DNA of 64,000 bases from Amphiscolops sp. MND2022 (lineage: Eukaryota): NCBI GenBank assembly GCA_964187785.1, contig OZ076413.1, positions 27,466,001-27,530,000 on the forward strand, given 5' to 3'. Position 1 is the stretch's first letter, and the number at the start of each line of letters is the position of its first letter. Below the pieces are notes generated by a model, which had not been told where the DNA came from, did not search any database, and saw only the letters and a program-made list of their open reading frames with translations. The position numbers and the translations under genes are program-made. This document shows, piece after piece, positions 38,792 through 59,484 of this stretch.

Positions 38792-40426
38792 ATGTCGGTT
38801 GAAGCTTCTTACGTTGGGTGTAGCAGTTGCTGTATCTCGAGTTGTCGAGAGGAAGGCCAGTTGCTGTACGTGCCAGTGCCATTGAGTGTGATCAACGAAG
38901 CTATTGACAGATCAAATGGGGAAAAGTTTTCAGTTGTGGTCAACATATCCCTTGAAAACGAACCTAAATCTCCTGAGAGAAGCCCGGTTTCCATTACAGA
39001 TGTTGGTACCCTTGATGAAAGGAAGGACAGTCTTAACAAGAAATTGTCTGCTAGAAGAACTCCCAGCGAGCTAAGAGATATGGGAATCCTATTATCTTCG
39101 CCATGTTTCCAAGCTGGCTCAATCCTCCAGAAATCACACGATCTTGAACGAGCGCGTGTTGGAAATCGTCTCTCTCAGAAGTTGAAATTGAGACCGGATA
39201 AGGATATTCTGGTTTCCCATAATATACTACGAGGATCCAATTTGGAACCCTTTGTGACTCAAACTCACAACAAGCTGAAAAGAAAATGGATTGAAGAGCA
39301 AATAGATCACTTCATTGCCAACAGACCCTTGCCTGAGAGCATACCGCACAATATAATGCACAGTCCAGCAAATGCTTCAAGTTCATCTGGAGGTATGGAG
39401 CAACAGTCATCAATTACCGACGGCCGCGTTCAATCGCAGTCTCAACGTCAGATGAGTATCTCAAATGTTCCTTCTCCACCTCCTTTACCGGTAACGATCA
39501 ACACTGATAACAAAATTAGAAGAGCGGTGACTAGTACTACATCCATTATTAAATCTGGAGGCTTCATATTCCACGAAGCTAGCCCCGAAGTTCGAACCAA
39601 TGATGAAATACGGAACAAACAGCAAGCTGTTATGGATAAAATTCTAAATACATCACCATCTTTGGATGCGGAAGTGTCTCAAATCTATCAAGGGATGACT
39701 GTGCCTGATTTGAAAGCCTTGTGTCGTCAGAGGGGTTTTACCGTGAGACAGAAAGCTACTAAGTCCGAATTGATTAAAATGCTAATGAACCAAGAGGAGG
39801 CCAAGAAAAATACTCGAGTAAGCCCTCCTACTGAAAGCCATGTTCAAAAAAGGGTTAGCAAACCGATGCCCAAAATAACCAAAGAAGAAATCAGTAAAAT
39901 CATAAATAGAGTACCATCATCGTCATCCCTTAGTGGTCTAGCCCAACTGTCGCTGGGCAGTCCAAACCCAAACTCAAACCCAGCCTCAGTTCAAAGTGCT
40001 CAAGTGCCATTGGTCTCACCGCCGTCGATTGCATCTGTTCACGAGCCTTGGTCTCTGCCTAATATAGACATGGTAGGATGTCGTCTGCCTTCGGAAGGCA
40101 GCTCAATGTCTGCGAATGATTTAGATATGATGGCAGATCAGCAAAGCATGTCTAGCCATTATAACGTTGATACAACGACTTTTCACGATAATCACTCCTG
40201 CATGAACGTTATGCAGTTTGATTCCAGCACTCAGTTCGTACCTAATTCAGATAATTCCACTACTTGTGCATCGTTCTATGGGAACGAGGACTTATTAGAT
40301 AGTAATCAAGAATTCTTGGTTTTCAACGAAGACGGAAAAACTTTCTTGGATAACTGCAGCCCCAATGCTTTCGAAGATTTACTTAACATGTCTCCGTTGA
40401 ATTCCGTCGAACCGTGCAATTTATGA
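38792..40426 (+). CDS. MRTF: Myocardin-related transcription factor-like protein (3 RPEL-like motifs plus SAP domain), single coding exon, 544 aa
   Basis: LNKKLSARRTPSELRDMGIL, LSQKLKLRPDKDILVSHNIL and IDHFIANRPLPESIPHNIM; SAP MTVPDLKALCRQRGFTVRQKATKSELIKML; acidic C-terminus. Confidence 0.85.
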   Translation: MSVEASYVGCSSCCISSCREEGQLLYVPVPLSVINEAIDRSNGEKFSVVVNISLENEPKSPERSPVSITDVGTLDERKDSLNKKLSARRTPSELRDMGILLSSPCFQAGSILQKSHDLERARVGNRLSQKLKLRPDKDILVSHNILRGSNLEPFVTQTHNKLKRKWIEEQIDHFIANRPLPESIPHNIMHSPANASSSSGGMEQQSSITDGRVQSQSQRQMSISNVPSPPPLPVTINTDNKIRRAVTSTTSIIKSGGFIFHEASPEVRTNDEIRNKQQAVMDKILNTSPSLDAEVSQIYQGMTVPDLKALCRQRGFTVRQKATKSELIKMLMNQEEAKKNTRVSPPTESHVQKRVSKPMPKITKEEISKIINRVPSSSSLSGLAQLSLGSPNPNSNPASVQSAQVPLVSPPSIASVHEPWSLPNIDMVGCRLPSEGSSMSANDLDMMADQQSMSSHYNVDTTTFHDNHSCMNVMQFDSSTQFVPNSDNSTTCASFYGNEDLLDSNQEFLVFNEDGKTFLDNCSPNAFEDLLNMSPLNSVEPCNL

Positions 40427-45353: not shown

Positions 45354-46384
45354 ATTAAATTCCAAAATTATTTCTGCTCCGGGAAATCAGTACGGAATTT
45401 AAAGATCGGAATTTTGTTCAAATATGAAAAAGTAAAACGCACAACACTGATCACTAAACAGATGTACAGTAATTCATAATGAAGTCATCAACAAGACAAG
45501 ACAAAATCAACTGATTCTTCTTTTTCAAAGAACGATTCTTCAGCAAAAGTTTCAATACTCTATTGAGTTTTTTTTGGTTGTTTTTGAGTTTTAGCACAAA
45601 ACATTGCATCAATCAAAAACATTCAAAGTTTCAAAATGCGCAAATCTTTCAAGTATGCTTATAAGCCGTTTTCAAGAAAGTCCAAGTTGATCCTGGAAAA
45701 GTTTGTATAATGACCACCTTCCCTTTCACCAAAACACTCTGGCCACTTGACTAACCAGACCTGTAATACGCTAAGTTATAAGTTTAGTTGAAAGATTTGA
45801 AATGATAGATGAAATTTCATTCAATTCGTGGGATCTCACTGTATTTTCCTTTTTCTTTGCTATAAAAATACAAAAGTTGAGAATTTTCAGCTGTCCAAGT
45901 AATATTTAAGTTGCCTTTCGATTAATATTATCGCAAACGACTTTTAATTGTAGTGAATTCTCGCTCTTCCTCTCATTTCTTGTCCTGTAATGCATTCATG
46001 TCCCAAGAATGCATTCAATGCTCTTCTATGCGCCTCCTGTTAAGCTATAAACGTTTTTCACGGATCATCTTAAGCTCGGTTTAGTATATGCAACAAAAAT
46101 ATGCCACTTGATGTATTTATCAATGCTTCAAACAGATAACACGGAAAGTGACATCAAAAATTAGAAGCGGAATTTTGGTTTGTGGACATGCTCTGTATTA
46201 TGAACTGTTTGTTGTCTTTATCAAAATTATGCTCATTTAAAACCTCTAATGGCTTTACTCTCGCTCGGAGTGATTTTAGATGCAATTTTCAACTATTTGT
46301 TTTACATGACTGCATGAAATTTGTTAATTTTTTTCAGATAATGTGACGAATTTGTGCTTAGCTTCCGTGAGCAGCAGTTGTTTG

Positions 46385-48953
46385 ATGTTTGAATACCCCG
46401 TTGTGGATATCTCTGAAACTGAGTCGAAAGCATTCTCTGAAATTGCCGCACCGAAGAACGCTAGTGCGAAGAAATCCTCGAAGCCAGAACTAATCAAAAG
46501 AGTTCAGTTCGCGCGCACGGTTGAGGTTTTCAAAATCAGCCCTGTGAAACTTGCTGACGTTTCTGATGACCACCATGCCTTTTGTTTTGCCCAATTAGAG
46601 AGTGATTCTGATGAGAGTGTCTCAAACGATGAAGAATTCGCGGACTGTCCAAGTCCTGTTATTCCAGGCAAGTCTTCACCTGTGACTCCGAAAGTTGATG
46701 CATCCGTCAATGAAATTGTGCAAGGGAGAATAAAGGTACGTTTATTCTCCGAAAATGGCGAATATGAGGGAGAGCAAGATAACCCGTGTATATCCAGTCC
46801 ACAATCTTTGAACCAAATGGACCCGGAAGATGGTTTCGTCTCTTTTTCTCAGCTTAGTTTGCTTTTTGACGAGACGTTCAACTCACAGCCCAAAAGTTTC
46901 ACGAATGTTTGCAATGAGACCTCGGAGAAAGTAGTATGTCATTCAGAATACTTACGAGGAAATGAGGACAATGCCCAACAATCAAAACTAAACGAGTCGC
47001 AGCTTCCTGCTCCAGAACTCGAAGAGGTTGAACCCGGTCATAGAAGTGGAGAAGACACACCAGATGTTGAAGTTTCCGAAAGACCGGCGGTTGATTCCGT
47101 TCACTCCAGGCGCTTAGAATTATGCGTTGCTGATGATGACGTTGACAATGGGTCCACAAAAATAGACAAAATAGAATCATTTGAGATAAATGAAGTTGGC
47201 ATAGATGAGGGTACTAATTCGCCCACCATAGACAATGAAAAATGCCAATTTCTTTGTCTTCACTCTATTGCTGCTGATGAAAGCAAAGAATCCTATGAAA
47301 AGAACGTTAAACTTTTGCAAGATCTGGAAGAATCGGAAAGTGACAGTCATAAATTGCTGCCTCCAGTAGAATCGGAGAAGCCGGCTTTCGTAGGCTTCCG
47401 CACTGCCGCTGGAAAAACCGTCTCGTATTCGAAAGAATCTGAGGAAAAAAGCAGGAAACTTTTGCAAGATCTGGACGAAACGGAAAGTGACAGTCATAAA
47501 TTGCTGCCTTCAGTAGAATCGGAGAAACCGGCTTTCGTAGGCTTCCGCACTGCCGCTGGAAAAACCGTCTCGTATTCGAAAGAATCTGAGGAAAAAAGCA
47601 GGAAACTTTTGCAAGATCTGGACGAAACGGAAAGTGACAGTCATAAATTGCTGCCTCCAGTAGAATCGGAGAAACCGGCTTTCGTAGGCTTCCGCACTGC
47701 CGCTGGAAAAACCGTCTCGTATTCGAAAGAATCTGAGGAAAAAAGCAGGAAACTTTTGCAAGATCTGGACGAAACGGAAAGTGACAGTCATAAATTGCTG
47801 CCTCCAGTAGAATCGGAGAAACCGGCTTTCGTAGGCTTCCGCACTGCCGCTGGAAAAACCGTCTCGTATTCGAAAGAATCTGAGGAAAAAAGCAGGAAAC
47901 TTTTGCAAGATCTGGACGAAACGGAAAGTGAGCAAAATAGCAAGTGTTCATCTCGAGGTGAATCTAAGAAACGAGTGCTAGTTGTATCATGTGCTGAGGA
48001 CACTCTAGAGAGACGTGCAGTCAAGCAAGACTCGAAGGAAAGCATTGAAAATGAGCTCGTTGGCCTTCCCAAGCTAACTGACCATGATAGTATTGGTCTA
48101 AAAACGCCTCTTGTTGTCGAGCCACCATTTTCAGTCCGTGGAAAATTAATTGCAGGAATGACACCTGAAAACCTAAAGAATATAAATTCCGTACCTTTTG
48201 AACCCAAACCATGTGTTCATACGCCTTTTCCTTCTAAAAATAGTCATCCTCCAAACAAAGAGCTATTTTTCAATGATGAAGCTAAGCCAAGTACTGTTAT
48301 CAGTAGTTTTGGAACAGCTTCTTCGAATACCAGTCAACCTGCTTATCAATTGAGAAGTCGTTCCAAGTCGAGTAAAACTTTCAAGAAACCTCGGTGCTTG
48401 TTTGAAATTGATGAGAAAGATTCAATAACTAGTAAGAAAGATGAAAATTCCACCAGCGTGGCAGAAAAGGGATCCGCAGCGAAGAATGCAAAAACTTCTT
48501 GCGAATCTAATACTTCGAAATCAGTTGCTGGTAAACGGGGTTCGACTTCCAAATTTAAATCTCCCGTGATTGCTGATAAACTAGTCCATGGCACTCATCT
48601 GAAAATAAATTTGAAAGAGTCTACAAATTCAACAGAGTCCACTGCTATATCAAACAAAATGGGCAGAATATTGAATATCAGAACTCAATGTTTGATGAAA
48701 CTGGCTTTCGAAGATCTTGCTGTGATAAATGATCACCGCACATCTAACGCAAGAATGGCATGTACGAAAGTTTATTGTATTGCTAAGAACGTGGTCTCAG
48801 GGTACAATTTTACGTTTGGAGTGGATGAGTTTTTCTCTCCGAAAGCTGTATCTACCGGAATTGTCTATATTGGTGATAATGCTGAGTTGAATATCAAAGG
48901 AAAGAAAACAATTGGCCCCCTTGATTTTCATCGTGCCATGTTGACTATTCCAG
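46385..48953 (+). CDS. BRCA2: BRCA2 homolog, large exon (acidic N-terminus, BRC array, start of helical domain); 5' end uncertain, exon acceptor at 46337
   Basis: Four FRTAAGKTVSYSKESEEKSRKLLQDL BRC motifs; ...LDFHRAMLTIP|G; donor CAG|GTGAGT. First in-frame ATG at 46385; an upstream coding exon cannot be excluded. Confidence 0.85.
47310..47931 (+). repeat. Coding tandem repeat, 147 bp / 49 aa x 4.2, each unit one BRC motif
   Basis: CTTTTGCAAGATCTGGA at 47312, 47459, 47606, 47753 and 47900; only a few nucleotide differences among units. Confidence 0.98.
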
Positions 48954-49423
48954 GTGAGTTACTGAGTTGGAACCAAAAACAGATTCGAAATACGTGAATT
49001 CAATTGGCAGATTATTGAAACATATTCGATTACTTGAAAGAAATCAACTCAATCATATCCAAGGCGTAAACTTATTTCTAGCGCTTTTCGCTATCGTAGT
49101 TCAGTCATAAAAACGGTCAATTCCTATTTATCTACATTATCTACATTTATCTGTAACGAGCACATTGTTGGTCAAATTCTGATGAAAATTTGAGTGACTG
49201 GGTTTGACTCCGTCGTATAATAAATTAAACTTGTCGAACATTTAGTGATGGTCTGAATATTGTGAATATTTAGGCTGTGATTCAGGTGGAAAACCAAAAG
49301 GCTATAATTTGAACTTTTGCTAACTGCCTCCTAAAAGTTGGATCAATCGCATGTGATTTCTGGACCCATAACGGAGCACTTAAATGATGGCTAATTGAAT
49401 GCATTGACTAAATTTAATTTTAG

Positions 49424-51048
49424 GTGTAACCAGAGTAATTGCCTCTGCAGATTGGGTGAAAGTAATGTATAGATGGATTGTGTGGAAACTAGCTGCTTAT
49501 GAGTTGACTTTTCCCTCCGTATTCCCAGCACACTCTCTGTTGAATCCAAGTATGGTCATGGAGCAACTGAAGTACAAATTTGATAGAGAGTACCATTTGG
49601 GTCAACGATCAGCCCTTCGTAAGATAATAGAACATGACGATACACCTGCCAAATGCATGATACTTGTGGTTTCTGATTCAAATACTGATCAAAAACCTTT
49701 TCTTGAAGTTTCTGATGGCTGGTACTTTGTTTCGTGTGAAATTGACCCACCTTTGCTGAATCTTGTTCGAACTGGGAAATTGAGTTCAGGGAGAAAAATT
49801 GCAGTCTGTGGATCCCAGCTTCTTAACGCAGATCAACCATCTGGGCCTCTGGAAGCTAGCGAAGGCTTGCGACTGAAGATATCTTACAATGGCTGTAAAC
49901 CAGCTCATTGGAACGCAAAGTTGGGATTCTATCGACAACATTTTGCTTTTGTTTCCAATTTGGCAAGCATCAGTCCAGACGGTGGAGTGGTTCCTGCTTT
50001 GAATGTTGTTATCCAGAGGGTTTACCCATTGGAGTTGAGTCAGACACTTGAGAATGGAAATGTTGAAACGAAAACGGAACGGCAGCATCGTAGAGACGAA
50101 AGTATGAAATACAGTCGAAGCTACCGAACAGATAATTCTTTGGAGGAGGGCTGTGACAAATCAATTTTGAAAGTTTTGCTGCGAATTCGTGTTTCGGATA
50201 CTATTGACCCTCAATGTAGCTGTGTTCTCAGTATTTGGCAGCCAACTGAGGATCTTATCGATCGGCTGAAAGAAGGAAAAGTGTTCCGTGTCACAAATGT
50301 TCGACCATATTTCCAAAGCCGCAATTTCCTGAATGATGACCACTTTGCTTTATCGGCTTCAAAATCAACTTCGTTCATTTCAGAGAAAATTGGAAGGTGT
50401 TTGACAAAGAACTCAGTTTCGGAAAAGTTTTTACCTCGAGTGCGAAATCAAATTTTTAAAGCTGCTTATTGTACACCGAAGTTCGGAGAATACGACTTGG
50501 TGGGGATAGTAGTTAGAGTGAATGACCCCGATTCCGGTTCTCCTACTCTCTTCATTTGCGATGAATTGAGCAACATTGCTGTTATTTTGTTTTGCAGTTC
50601 TCTGAAACATTTAGCTTTAGACAAAATTGTTGACCTTAAGTCGGTGCTGTTTTTCAAAAATTTGAGGTTGAACAAAAAGTTTGTTAATAATGTTGATGTA
50701 TTGCATTTTGATTTTTGTGCTATATCTGACGTGGAAACGTGGAAAAGCGATAAATTCCCAAAGTTGGATCAAGATTTGAATAAAATTTTATCGACAGCTC
50801 AGCAATCAGTTCATAGACTTATCCATGGTTCAAGGTTGAGAAGCGGAAAAAATGTTGCCTCTGAGCGTAAACGGCCTCAAATTCAAGAAGAATTAGCAAG
50901 CGACAAAGAAGAAAAAAGCTTCGAATGGCGAATGAAAAAGCTCAGTAGAATTCCTTCACCGCCTAAGTCAATGTTGTTTGCTCCTGAATGTGAGACTCCA
51001 ATTGCCAAGCGTGCGAGGATGGAGTTCAAAAGCCCAGTGATGTCCTGA
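49424..51048 (+). CDS. BRCA2: BRCA2 exon encoding helical domain, OB1-OB3 and C-terminus; with the previous exon gives ~1397 aa
   Basis: Acceptor TTTTAG|; WVKVMYRWIVWKLAAYE, QLKYKFDRE...RSALRKIIEHDD, EVSDGWY, WNAKLG, IQRVYP, EYDLVGIVV, LSRIPSPP. Confidence 0.95.
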
Positions 51049-51899
51049 ATTCTTTGAATTTGAAGGTATTCTGTTCTATTAGTTCGATTAGTACTCCAAT
51101 TGTTCAATTCCTTAAAAGTGCAAATTAACTTAATCATGTATAATTTTCCTTTTCGAGCCACTTTGGTTTTACAATCAACTAATAGCAAGTAGATAAGCTC
51201 GTGCTATAGTTCTGACAGACCTATCGTCAAATTTTCCTGATTTTACTGGCACTCAATTTCATTTTTTTTCTTCCGGCATGAACTGTGAATTGTCACAATA
51301 GTTTGAATTGGGCACTACAACTAATTAGTTTTTTTCGAAAATATTTGTATTTAATGAAAGTGGGGTTTTTCATTGTCTGAAATAGAAAAGTCTTCATATA
51401 CATTTCTAAAATCATTCTTCGAATGCCTAGAGCTCAAACTTCCAAAACAAGTGGCATAAAACTCAGAATTGAAATATTCTGCACATGAGAAACTGCTTTC
51501 AGTTACACTATTGTGAGCTGTTGTTCCGTGTTCTCTTAATAAATGCCTGATATGTTGCTTCTTTGAAACTTCTGAATCCATTGACGGGTAATAAACGAAC
51601 ACGAATTTCGAACCTTAAAGTCGTCCCGATTTCCGCTAAGGGTGGAATTGTTTTTGAAAAAGTTAACACTGTTAGTCGATGATAATTGAATAATAAGTTT
51701 TTCTCGGAAAGATTTTAAAGTTTTGGACTTCGCGTTTTCAAAGAAAAAGCACGACTCTTACAATGGCTAGTTTTTTTGTTAGCTCAACGCGATAGGTAGA
51801 CTTTTTGTGCACTTTTACCATAAGTACTTAGTACTTGATTTTGATGACATCCAAAGCCTCTAACATAAAATACAAAACCATTCCAAAGCAGAAGGTTTC

Positions 51900-52685: not shown

Positions 52686-52819
52686 AAAGCCTTAAGTGAG
52701 ACAGTGACCTTGGCCGTTGACAGACGGTTTGTTTTCTGCAATAATATTGAGTACTGACAGATCGGCTTGTTTCAGAACTAATGCTGTACATAGTCTCATG
52801 AAGTTTGGTGTGTGCGAAA

Positions 52820-55345
52820 ATGAGTGGAGAGGAATCGCAAGACACTGACTGCGAGCTTCCTGAAGAACACAACAGCGGCGGAGCAGTAGTCGAAGTGGCG
52901 GCCCAAGCTACGTCATCACCTGTGACCTCGCTGCCTGATGTTGTGACAGCCAGTCATGTGCAAGCTGCCAATCAAGTGCAATCTTCCAACATCCAAGAAA
53001 ATCAACCAATCTCACAATCTGCGTCACATCCCGAGTCACTTTCTCTCGCTTTATCTTCTTCACAGCCAGCGTCGCCACAGAAACATCTGGTCGTTGCTTC
53101 TGGAAGCACTCCGTCATCACCACAGCGTCAGCCAGCTAACAGTATCCAAGGGCCTCCTGGAGGGTCTCCGTTGCGCAACCAGCCCAAAGGTCAAATTGGC
53201 TTCACAATTGACTTCGACGACACAGGTGTCTCTTGGAATTTGAAAAGCGACCTCAACCAGTTTTTGCCTAGTAGTCGCAAGTTGAGAATGGAAGGTAGGC
53301 GGTCTGCCACCAAAGATTTTTTGCCTTCTAGGAAACATCACGCTACACGATCTCTGTCACCGAGAGAAAGGCAAAGCATGGACAAAGATGAGCCGGAAGC
53401 CGATGCACAGCCCTGTAATGATAAAGATGATTTGCTGAGTGAGGCAGGAACCTATATTATCGACAACGTTCCGGCGTCCAAACCCCAACTCACAGTTCCT
53501 CCGAAACCAAGGCCAAAGAATTTACGCGGGGACTACATAGAGCTGAATGACAGTTCAATACTACAGACCCAGAAGTTCGTAGATATAGAAACTCATGACT
53601 TTACAATCGGCCAGTCATCATTAATGGAATCCTTCCTGGATCATGCCGCGGCAGCTGCTGCGGTTAATGTATCCACCGAAACACTGGGGAATTCCAGGCT
53701 GAATGTGAACGAGATAGACAAAATGGCGGCTGAAGCTATAACACCTGTCGCTTCTGATGATGAGAAAGATCAAGTCTCGGAAAAGCAAAGTAGAAATAAT
53801 TTCAACTTAAATTCGGAAACTGGAGGAGATAAATATGCAACTTTTTCAAGGGGTCGGAAAACTGTTTCAGTTCAACCTAGAATGAGAGCAACTGCAATCC
53901 CGTGCAGGTCAAATGACGTAACCCCTGCTAAAGAACAATCTAAAGATCTTTTTGAGAAGGCCTCTAAGCAGATGTCCGAACGAAGCAAGTCACCGCAGTA
54001 CACTTCAAGTTTGACAAGTAGTTCCATAGTTTCTTCCAAAGTCAGTTCTGCCAACAAAGAGACAATGGATTCGTCCAAAGATAATACATCGGATAAAAAG
54101 AGTGAGAAAACAAAGGGTGAAAGCAGGAATATTTCAAACCTCGCCATAAGGAGACCTAGTTCAGCGAACGCTGGAAAACTCAAGTCTGCGAAAGTTGACG
54201 TGGACAAAAGACTGGTGGACATGGAAGAAGCATTGAAGAAGACGATGAAAGTGTCACTAGGCACAAAGGTTCTGGCTCAATATAACACGGATAACTCTTC
54301 GCCTGCTAGAGCTACCCCACCGCAGCCTAAAACAACTGGCAATTTCACCCGCGCAACTCCAATTAGACGAAGTGCGGGGCCTATTCTTTCAGGAAGTAAA
54401 CAGAAAGCAAGCGATATCAACAGTTTGTCATCAGGGTCCGATGTTTTCGACGACAAAAAAGCGGCCGTGCCTCCTGCTAAACCGCTAGCTTCGAATACCC
54501 GCAGCCTCGGACCCCCTCCTTCTCCCACTGCATCCGTGCGCATGAACAAAGCAATGAAATTACGCATGAAAAAGTTTTCTGATTGTGATGATATGGACTG
54601 CTTGAGCATGACTAGTGACGGTGCATCATCAAAATCTATGTCGAACAGCAAGAAGTTGACAACCTTCTCACGAGCTAATCCTTTGTACAAATCACTACCA
54701 GCTAACCGCGGAAGTGGGGTGGGAACTCCTGGAAATCAGACTTCTAGAGCAGCCATGGCCGCTAAAGTTGTGAAACCTGTGATATTGCCCAATAAAACAA
54801 CAATTGGAGGCTCTGCTAAAACTGGCAACATCTCTAGCGCAACACATCGCAATACTGCCAAGTTGCAAGTTCACAACAAACCTGGAGACACGGGGCTGCG
54901 TACAAATTCTAGTGGCAGTCGGACTCCTGATGAAACAAATTTAAGCACCTTTGATAAGCTGGTTCTGTCTTCAATTGATCAGTTGAGCAAAAAGTTGAAC
55001 ATCAATTCATCCTTGTTGGTTAATCTTTGTCAACAACACGACTCGCAGCTGACGGGTTTGACTGATCTGACCAACATTGGCGCCAAAAGTGACAAAGGTA
55101 TTAGAAACACAAAGGGTGAAAATGGAGGGTGCGATATACCTAAATTGAAAACGGGATGTCAGGAAATTTCAGCAATTCTGTACGAGCTCAGAGTGGTGGA
55201 GAAAAACATAGACCACGTAACTCGCCATCTGAATACAGTTACAAGCAATAAGTGCAATGATACCTTCTCTCAATCTCTGGACAACTCTTTCAACAGCGGG
55301 GGTGGAGCAAACAACGATATGTGTGATCTGGTTGAATACTTTTGA
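52820..55345 (+). CDS. CEP170: CEP170-like centrosomal protein, single exon, 841 aa, no FHA domain
   Basis: GFTIDFDD and SEAGTYII motifs. C-terminal DKLVLSSIDQLSKKL...IPKLKTGCQEISAILYELRVVEKNI matches the CEP170_C pattern (LLLSSVFQFSKKI...EISSILQELKRVEKQL). First ATG at 52820, in-frame TGA at 52799. Confidence 0.75.
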   Translation: MSGEESQDTDCELPEEHNSGGAVVEVAAQATSSPVTSLPDVVTASHVQAANQVQSSNIQENQPISQSASHPESLSLALSSSQPASPQKHLVVASGSTPSSPQRQPANSIQGPPGGSPLRNQPKGQIGFTIDFDDTGVSWNLKSDLNQFLPSSRKLRMEGRRSATKDFLPSRKHHATRSLSPRERQSMDKDEPEADAQPCNDKDDLLSEAGTYIIDNVPASKPQLTVPPKPRPKNLRGDYIELNDSSILQTQKFVDIETHDFTIGQSSLMESFLDHAAAAAAVNVSTETLGNSRLNVNEIDKMAAEAITPVASDDEKDQVSEKQSRNNFNLNSETGGDKYATFSRGRKTVSVQPRMRATAIPCRSNDVTPAKEQSKDLFEKASKQMSERSKSPQYTSSLTSSSIVSSKVSSANKETMDSSKDNTSDKKSEKTKGESRNISNLAIRRPSSANAGKLKSAKVDVDKRLVDMEEALKKTMKVSLGTKVLAQYNTDNSSPARATPPQPKTTGNFTRATPIRRSAGPILSGSKQKASDINSLSSGSDVFDDKKAAVPPAKPLASNTRSLGPPPSPTASVRMNKAMKLRMKKFSDCDDMDCLSMTSDGASSKSMSNSKKLTTFSRANPLYKSLPANRGSGVGTPGNQTSRAAMAAKVVKPVILPNKTTIGGSAKTGNISSATHRNTAKLQVHNKPGDTGLRTNSSGSRTPDETNLSTFDKLVLSSIDQLSKKLNINSSLLVNLCQQHDSQLTGLTDLTNIGAKSDKGIRNTKGENGGCDIPKLKTGCQEISAILYELRVVEKNIDHVTRHLNTVTSNKCNDTFSQSLDNSFNSGGGANNDMCDLVEYF

Positions 55346-58447: not shown

Positions 58448-58742
58448 GTTGGTTGATTTGTGATATCTGTGTTAAGAGTGGCTTTAATTTGAGATCATTG
58501 GTTATTCTAATGCTCCGTGCCTTGTTGGCAAAGAACTGCCTATAATTGGCAATGAACATAAGCAAGCACTTTTTACCCGTTGAACTGATATACTGTTTAT
58601 ATCGAGTCTAACCACCGTTTGAAGCTTTAAAGGGGAAAGTTCGAGATAAATGCGAATGCCAGTCATTCACCTTACTGATAGTAGTTTCGACTCAGTTCCA
58701 TGGTTGAAAAACCATGAATGTTTGGTTGCATTTATCTTTCAG

Positions 58743-59106
58743 GACATTTTTGGACTACTTACCGGAGCCGACAGTGTACGAAACATCTTCGGATAGCGGA
58801 GAATCTTCTGGGTCAGAGAGAAGTGACAGCGGCCGAACGAGGACCGAGGAGAAAAAGACGGGCAAACGTAGGTCTAATTGCGACTACGAAAGATACAAGA
58901 CGTTGATCCAAAACGACTACCTGTGTATTGACGAGGCGGCGTGTCTGAAGCAGATCTACCAGGAAGAGGAGCATGGGGGCGTGGTAGGGTTGTCTTCATC
59001 AACGGCAGCAGGTGCTCCTAACGGTAGTGCTCCTCTCCATGCGCTCGATAAAAGTAGCAAAAGTTCAACTTCTACTACCGCAAGTTCAACCACCTCTACC
59101 GCCAAA
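58743..59106 (+). CDS. CLASRP: CLASRP exon 3
   Basis: TFLDYLPE...CDYERYKTLIQNDY; donor AAA|GTAGGG, in phase with exon 4. Confidence 0.85.
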
Positions 59107-59484
59107 GTAGGGTCAAGTAATTATTCTCCCTTCTTCTTCTTCTTGTTCATTCACTATCAATCTCAGTTTGGAACACAGGCACTCTGAACATGGTGAAGTG
59201 TTTTTTGCTTCCAGTTGAATTATCTTTCAGTTCTAGACAGGGTTGTTACAATTTGATACTCGAGGATTTAACTAGTTTCCAACATGAGTTAAATCATTAA
59301 ACAAGAAGCGCAGTGGCACTGCAATATTTTTGGTATACTGTTACAAGACGCCTTTACGTAAAAATTGGCAACTTACCAACCCCAATTGTTTGAAAACGGA
59401 AACGCAACAGAATAGTTTCAACTAAAATGCCCCTACAGTTCTGAAAACTAGTGCATGCTTATAGGGTATCAAGAGGGCAATTTT

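Follow-up and report, generated by a model that had tools for sequence, protein, structure and literature searches.

A copy-variable, homogenized array of BRC repeats in the BRCA2 gene of the acoel Amphiscolops

How does a BRCA2 gene come to carry a row of nearly identical BRC repeats, how old is such a row, and is the number of its units fixed within a species? The RAD51 load of a BRCA2 molecule is set by its number of BRC repeats, and these questions are raised by a locus of Amphiscolops sp. MND2022 that lies in a stretch of 64,000 nucleotides (NCBI GenBank assembly GCA_964187785.1, contig OZ076413.1, positions 27,466,001 to 27,530,000 of the forward strand). This whole stretch is called the window here, and positions are counted from its first letter. 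A first-pass annotation, made from the letters of the window, had recognized near-identical tandem BRC units of BRCA2 and proposed their recent amplification and a polymorphic copy number. According to the analyses described below, the locus is, with high probability, a compact two-exon BRCA2 gene whose 147-bp BRC array is kept alike by unequal exchange or slippage, occurs in haplotypes with 4 and 10 units, and has an architecture older than the split from a sister species.

BRC array and structure of the BRCA2 gene

Tandem Repeats Finder (TRF), applied to the window between 45 and 50 kb, reported one array only (47309-47931), with a period of 147 bp, 4.2 copies, 98% matches, no indels, and a score of 1218. 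The unit encodes 49 amino acids and is read in frame within an open frame at 46343-48997 (Table 1). Both TRF and an in-register reading agreed in every particular with the first-pass description of four near-identical 49-amino-acid units, the third and fourth of which are identical. Four stretches of the same frame were assigned to the BRC repeat family of Pfam (PF00634; 41.3 bits versus a cutoff of 20.3), and human BRC4, as seen in its crystal structure with RAD51 (PDB 1N0W), could be aligned to 30 residues of the unit (E 0.005) with F-x-x-A conserved, which bears out the identification of the units as BRC repeats of BRCA2. The FxxA module of BRC repeats imitates the motif by which RAD51 oligomerizes. 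In this alignment, FRTA of the unit falls on FHTA of human BRC4, and FRTA is invariant in all units of the 4-unit and 10-unit alleles and in the array units of the sister species. The second module, KLLQD, stands opposite NLFDE of BRC4 at the right spacing and retains the hydrophobic pair and one acidic residue, not being a literal LFDE; its conserved counterpart in the sister species is KLLLD.

A profile built from 153 homologues was also used to scan the window between 40 and 58 kb, where the four array BRCs were the only significant BRC matches (independent E value [i-E] of ~1e-12 each). The 147-bp unit was found nowhere else in the 1.07-Gb genome and is therefore not a dispersed repeat. 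Ahead of the array, the half-degenerate fifth unit reported by the first-pass annotation is real: taken against the BRC profile alone, it matched positions 15 to 34 (the second half) only, without significance, and BLASTP aligned it, with a 3-amino-acid gap, to the first BRC of the sister species, which is intact (E 1e-6). A possible relic of a further BRC lies downstream of the array. In the window species, FxxA has thus gone from the upstream edge BRC and, as suggested by a weak alignment only, from the downstream one as well. The BRCs that are intact (4 in the window allele and 10 in the other) are therefore all copies of the array unit. An antisense open frame of 214 amino acids (47307-47951, minus strand) and three shorter ones also overlie the array, because the repeat unit has no stop codon in those frames; they do not speak for a gene.

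The array belongs to the first of two coding exons, which together most likely make up the coding gene. Helical, OB1, OB2, and OB3 domains of BRCA2 (Pfam PF09169, PF09103, PF21318, and PF09104) were detected in the next open frame (49456-51048), and a spliced contig of run X1 joined the BRC array to this DNA-binding-domain exon. The contig follows the genome up to 48956, and its next 25 letters match 49427-49451, GTG being common to both sides. Among the X1 contigs, the depth at this intron was 275 for the spliced form versus 21 for the unspliced form; X1 therefore behaves like an RNA library, as which it is not recorded, and BRCA2 is transcribed and spliced. Translation probably begins at the ATG at 46385, as judged by the sister protein (P0026), which starts at the corresponding conserved methionine. 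A possible splice acceptor was seen at 46337/46338, so that the 5' limit of exon 1 is one that we infer. The resulting protein would have 1,397 amino acids in the 4-unit allele and 1,691 amino acids in the 10-unit allele. The window's genome contains a single copy of the BRCA2 DNA-binding exon, as well as a multi-exon RAD51 gene that is split over at least five exons.

The BRCA2 intron differs greatly in length between the two species, with 470 bp in the window versus ~21 kb in the sister (L008/L002, ERZ26859043 ctg87471, 126822-147717). The C-terminal tail of BRCA2 (50920-51045, plus strand; FEWRMKKLSRIPSPP...ECETPIAKRARMEFKSPV) is nearly invariant between them and includes a basic KRAR stretch. 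The idea that the last 60 amino acids contain a TR2-like RAD51-binding motif was considered and dropped, a search of PDB sequences having yielded no significant match; to assign a TR2-like or nuclear-localization role to the tail would be only a guess.

Table 1. Features of the BRCA2 locus, in window coordinates
Feature	Position	Strand	Basis or remark
BRCA2 coding exon 1 (start codon likely): N-terminal region, BRC array, start of helical domain	46385-48953	+	Open frame 46343-48997; Pfam BRC, four matches
Decayed first (edge) BRC	~47245-47341	+	FxxA lost (LHSI for FRTA); 3 amino acids deleted; second module KESYEKNVKLLQDL retained
Array unit 1	47309-47455	+	3 nt off consensus: D7E, T9S, and one synonymous
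Array unit 2	47456-47602	+	1 nt off consensus: P19S, common to unit 2 of the 10-unit allele
Array unit 3	47603-47749	+	Equal to consensus
Array unit 4	47750-47896	+	Equal to consensus and to unit 3
Partial fifth unit, 35 bp	47897-47931	+	KLLQDLDETES; gives the fourth BRC its LFDE-like second module (BRC4 alignment)
Four intact BRC motifs, core FVGFRTAAGKTVSYSKESEEKSRKLLQDL	47387-47488, 47534-47635, 47681-47782, 47828-47929	+	Local BRC profile, Pfam PF00634, BRC4 of PDB 1N0W
Possible decayed relic of terminal non-array BRC (VLVVSCAEDT...)	47975-48058	+	Weak; only position in MAFFT right-flank alignment; sister counterpart intact (FPGFQTGKGKLVSFSDKSLNKSRKL)
Intron, GT-AG, 470 bp	48954-49423	+	CAG/GTGAGT ... 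TTTTAG/GTG; spliced contig of run X1
BRCA2 coding exon 2: end of helical domain, OB1-OB3, conserved C-terminal tail, stop	49424-51048	+	Pfam; 73% identical to sister up to stop codon common to both

Array length in two haplotypes and array sequence in a sister species

A protein search with the DNA-binding exon led to a 99% identical protein on an ENA contig (L001; assembly ERZ25074608, ctg184712_99x, 365 kb), the array of which comprises 10.2 copies of the 147-bp unit with 96% matches and no indels, that is, 10 units. Another contig of the same assembly (L014; ctg183010_94x, 202 kb) has 4 units and equals the window at all 8,613 bases; the window's genome and assembly ERZ25074608 therefore share a source. 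Of the 2,067 exon sites compared beside the array, 8 (0.39%) distinguish the 10-unit contig from the window, and the two are collinear over more than 20 kb, with aligned blocks that are 98.0 to 99.6% identical and with the same neighboring genes. Diagnostic variants are common to units 1 and 2 of both alleles, and the grouping of the two first units in the tree of units (W1 with A1, 98/93 support) marks them as orthologues. None of the 10 units of L001 matches the pure consensus represented by units 3 and 4 of the window, so the 4-unit array is not a collapsed form of the 10-unit one. Within L001, variants are shared among units as a mosaic, with a single difference between units 6 and 8 and two between units 5 and 9, as expected from repeated exchange between units. 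Thus, 4 versus 10 units is a length polymorphism between two haplotypes differing by six in-frame units, as the first-pass annotation had foreseen in calling the copy number probably polymorphic.

Run X1 contained a third flanking haplotype (46725 A). Logan k-mer contigs of this run and of three others (X1 to X4) break inside the array and collapse it to one contig of 157 to 177 nt, with a ratio of array-contig depth to flank depth of ~6 to 10 in X1 and ~4 to 7 in X2 to X4; these ratios fit several copies and were not used as a copy number. The contig names of ERZ25074608 point, in our own interpretation, to a long-read metagenome assembler. The 10-unit haplotype also has a tandem duplication of ~790 bp covering the stop codon of BRCA2 and the 3' flank (window 50817-51602; L001:12145-13730), visible as two BLAST matches and two identical 93-amino-acid open frames, where the window has one copy.

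The same gene was compared with that of a sister species (assembly ERZ26859043), whose DNA-binding exon is 73% identical to that of the window at a synonymous divergence (dS) of 2.7, with synonymous sites saturated. The BRC exon of the sister (protein P0026, L008:10001-13285) lies ~21 kb upstream of its DNA-binding exon; it was not present within 10 kb upstream of that exon (L002; tblastn, motif scan, and TRF), and a protein search later located it. Its array has a period of 147 bp, 8.6 copies, and 96% matches, with nine near-identical array BRC motifs of a sequence of their own and one diverged BRC further downstream. Between the species, the consensus units agree at 104 of 147 nt (71% identity, 29% divergence), whereas units within one array differ on average by 2.0 nt in the window, 5.1 nt in L001, and 4.1 nt in the sister, i.e., by 1.4 to 3.5%. 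A maximum-likelihood tree of the units accordingly consisted of species-specific clades with 100/100 support, 0.39 changes per site apart.

The two parts of the unit have evolved differently between the species. The 29-amino-acid BRC core, with 27 of 29 residues identical, has a nonsynonymous divergence (dN) of 0.031 and a dS of 1.44 and is under strong purifying selection (dN/dS of ~0.02), whereas the 20-amino-acid linker (dN of 0.76, dS of 0.62) evolves freely. Freedom between species combined with near-uniformity within each array, as seen in this linker, points to concerted evolution, not to constraint. The BRCs at the edges escape homogenization, and those of the window species have decayed. 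Moreover, the arrays of both species have the same 147-bp period, the same phase, and the same unique flanks, and the sequence after the last unit is homologous. The ancestor therefore already had BRCs spaced 49 amino acids apart, and the architecture of the array predates the split from the sister species, the present unit sequences alone being young. Expansion is accordingly not confined to one species, the ground on which the array of Trypanosoma brucei has been called recent: the sister has nine array units of the same period. In the first-pass annotation, recent expansion and concerted evolution had been offered as alternatives. Concerted evolution, or recent turnover, is supported by the species-specific clades, whereas "recently amplified" holds only by half, as a sister with saturated synonymous sites has an array of the same period.

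Alternative explanations and neighboring genes

Several points weigh against the reading preferred here. The k-mer contigs collapse the array, so that the unit counts of the two alleles are those of assembled contigs; a single assembly supplied both alleles, and its sample could be one diploid animal, a clone, or a pool; and if each lineage had independently expanded an ancestral pair of units, the outcome would be indistinguishable from that of continuous homogenization of a long ancestral array. An assembly artefact, by which one true array length was collapsed or expanded in one contig, is suggested by the fact that tandem arrays are classic misassembly sites, by the break of short-k contigs of all four runs within this array, and by the precedent of the T. 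brucei reference, which overstated the BRC number (15 predicted versus 11 measured; PMC2408642). However, the arrays are merely 0.6 and 1.5 kb long, the 4-unit form occurs in two assemblies with zero mismatches over 8.6 kb, the reading frame is kept in both forms, and the two forms stand on contigs with different flanking single-nucleotide polymorphisms and different unit variants, including the 4-unit consensus that is absent from all 10 units of the longer form; an artefact is therefore very improbable. We give equally little credence to a recent segmental duplication that would make the two contigs paralogous BRCA2 loci, not alleles. Both contigs do belong to one assembly, and the nominal coverage given in their names is similar (94x and 99x), but the chromosome-scale genome of the window has one BRCA2 DNA-binding exon and one array, and the collinearity, shared neighbors, and block identities described above are as expected of haplotypes.

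More weight, albeit still that of an unlikely explanation, belongs to the view that each species recently amplified, on its own, a short ancestral array of about two units, in place of the long-term homogenization of a long array. Such amplification would accord with a within-array divergence of a few percent set against saturated divergence between the species, with a copy number that shifts as fast as from 4 to 10 within one species, and with the species-specific expansion known from T. brucei. Against this, the two species agree exactly in the 147-bp period and also in the phase and in both flanks, which calls for at least two units spaced 49 amino acids apart in the ancestor. The two explanations differ only in the ancestral copy number, which two species cannot give.

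Under the preferred reading, in which a long-standing array is kept alike by exchange among its units, each 49-amino-acid unit would comprise one complete BRC motif (the FRTA module and the LFDE-like LLQD module) and a 20-amino-acid linker. By homology with BRCA2, each unit would bind one RAD51 monomer via FxxA and the second module, and the downstream OB-fold exon would, as established for BRCA2, place the bound RAD51 on single-stranded DNA; the 10-unit protein could then carry more RAD51 than the 4-unit protein. The pattern of variants suggests that unequal exchange or replication slippage between in-frame 147-bp units adds or removes whole BRCs and that the same process may homogenize the units, i.e., cause their concerted evolution. 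An effect of copy number on phenotype would follow by inference. The first-pass annotation had further suggested that the array may tune RAD51 loading in a genome rich in transposable elements, an idea that gained no support, as nothing found links the array to such tuning.

Around the gene, the order MRTF/myocardin-like gene (RPEL and SAP), SR-protein RRM exon, BRCA2, 846-amino-acid open frame, and SFSWAP-like gene (DRY_EERY) is common to the window, the other haplotype, and the sister (window 38792-40426, about 43500, and 58714-59187; L008:1-1546). The 846-amino-acid frame (52805-55345, plus strand) begins 1.7 kb downstream of the BRCA2 stop codon, has no Pfam domain, and stays open in the other haplotype (841 amino acids, L001:14954-17479) and in the sister (838 amino acids, L002:20498 onward). 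It looks like a conserved gene with no assigned function. Its candidacy as a C-terminal exon of BRCA2 was rejected, given the lack of a Pfam domain, the lack of similarity to the 153 BRCA2 homologues, and the BRCA2 stop codon common to the sister. Elsewhere, an intronless BiP/GRP78 gene (L009:1417-3375; G000:C6:37258512-37260470) of the same assembly had its best named match in Convolutriloba macropyga (Acoela, Convolutidae) at 91% identity, with other named matches at no more than 83%. By this single marker, the genome is probably that of an acoel.

BRC arrays in other organisms and the meaning of the copy number

A close published counterpart is BRCA2 of T. brucei, which has a tandem array of virtually identical 132-bp (44-amino-acid) units, the last of which is degenerate and of which an allele contains between 5 and 12 (PMC2408642), so that the precedent of a homogeneous, copy-variable BRC array cited by the first-pass annotation holds. 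The expansion is absent from close relatives, which have 1 to 3 BRCs, and was read as recent; its growth and contraction by recombination between units were proposed in the same study (PMC2408642), and experiments showed that RAD51 foci depend on the number of repeats (Hartley and McCulloch 2008, PMC2408642; Trenaman et al. 2013, PMC3553974). Both systems have near-identical head-to-tail units that are longer than the BRC motif (132 bp there and 147 bp, or 49 amino acids, here), a degenerate unit at the edge, and alleles that vary in copy number (5 to 12 there, 4 and 10 here). Unlike in T. brucei, where close relatives are without the expansion, a deeply diverged sister of Amphiscolops has its own homogenized array of the same period; furthermore, the host here is an animal without a context of antigenic variation.

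Among animals, the number of BRCs is 7, 9, or 11 in ten strains of Drosophila pseudoobscura and 3 or 5 in D. yakuba and D. santomea (PMC2882388), and this variation in dmbrca2 was explained by unequal crossing-over with contractions and expansions (Bennett and Noor 2009; Bennett, Mercer and Noor 2010, PMC2882388). The Amphiscolops gene resembles dmbrca2 as an animal BRCA2 with a BRC number that is polymorphic within a species. It differs in the similarity of its units, which are 96 to 100% identical, whereas those of D. yakuba are clearly diverged (e.g., 17% at the amino acid level plus an 18-amino-acid gap between repeats 2 and 4), and in the possession of a canonical BRCA2 DNA-binding domain, which is lacking in Drosophila (10.1101/2025.03.19.644124). 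With vertebrate BRCA2, the acoel protein has in common the motif (FxxA and an LFDE-like module, alignable to human BRC4) and the architecture of the DNA-binding domain. Vertebrates, however, have eight fixed, non-identical, and unevenly spaced repeats that are individually conserved across species, whereas the intact repeats here are all copies of one unit and vary in number between alleles. BRC repeats are also listed, in a review-type remark, among repeats with striking evolution in specific clades (PMC4558858). A full-text literature search on BRCA2 BRC repeats in acoels returned no relevant paper.

To survey BRC arrays more widely, the BRC exon was searched against 1.84 billion representative proteins, which gave 262 matches at E values up to 0.001, and the best 147 non-self matches were scanned with the BRC profile. 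As the query favors regular arrays, the results are examples, not frequencies; each array record is a single gene model. At least four adjacent whole-period units with at least 90% identity occurred in 14 of these 147 proteins, and at least six such units occurred in 10; the 14 matches span cnidarians, flatworms, insects, sponges, and apicomplexans. They include Besnoitia besnoiti (XP_029220465.1, 16 units of 62 amino acids), Hydra vulgaris (XP_065669169.1, 16 units of 41 amino acids), Schistosoma turkestanicum (CAH8524548.1, 10 units of 49 amino acids), the sawfly Cephus cinctus (XP_015598323.1, about 7 units of 56 amino acids), and the sponge Ephydatia muelleri (KAL5459910.1, 44-amino-acid units), all with runs of whole-period units of at least 90% identity like those of the window. 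Unit lengths and sequences differ among these taxa, and the arrays were therefore homogenized separately. No paper describing the near-identical BRC arrays of Hydra, Schistosoma, Besnoitia, Cephus, or Ephydatia was found in the literature searched. A different picture was seen in a more distant relative (P0027, NCBI GCA_049309645.1), in which ten tightly spaced BRCs have a mean core identity of only 46%. The commonest modal spacing was 49 amino acids (17 of 69 proteins), a figure from which no conclusion is drawn, as a query of the same period biases the ranking.

The view that homogeneous tandem BRC arrays are unusual in animals, from which the first-pass annotation had started, is thus wrong, given the published Drosophila case (PMC2882388) and the uniform arrays in Hydra, Schistosoma, Cephus, and Ephydatia. 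Tentatively, and with rather less than even confidence, it may be proposed that BRCA2 genes outside vertebrates commonly carry homogenized, length-variable BRC arrays and retain them over long times. Concerted evolution would then keep the RAD51-binding units equivalent, while the BRC number would evolve fast, could be heterozygous, as with 4 and 10 units here, and might be under selection. The acoel pair, as far as its sequences go, shows that such an array can persist past the saturation of synonymous sites.

As a pattern, a uniform BRC array with a variable copy number is already known from trypanosomes and fruit flies, and the acoel case adds a well-supported example. It corrects the view of animal BRC repeats as always ancient and divergent and reveals no new mechanism. 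Experiments in T. brucei indicate that one BRC suffices for basic function and that more BRCs improve repair under stress (PMC2408642, PMC3553974), and a 2026 mouse preprint reportedly indicates likewise that one repeat supports basic function and that more repeats give better repair under stress (PMC12803100). Together, the two acoel species make a clean teaching case of concerted evolution in an essential repair gene, in which the linker is changeable between species and uniform within an array and the core is fixed by selection. The animal lineage concerned is used in work on regeneration and asexual reproduction. Its natural polymorphism of 4 and 10 units would offer a route to the effect of BRC dose on phenotype without engineering.

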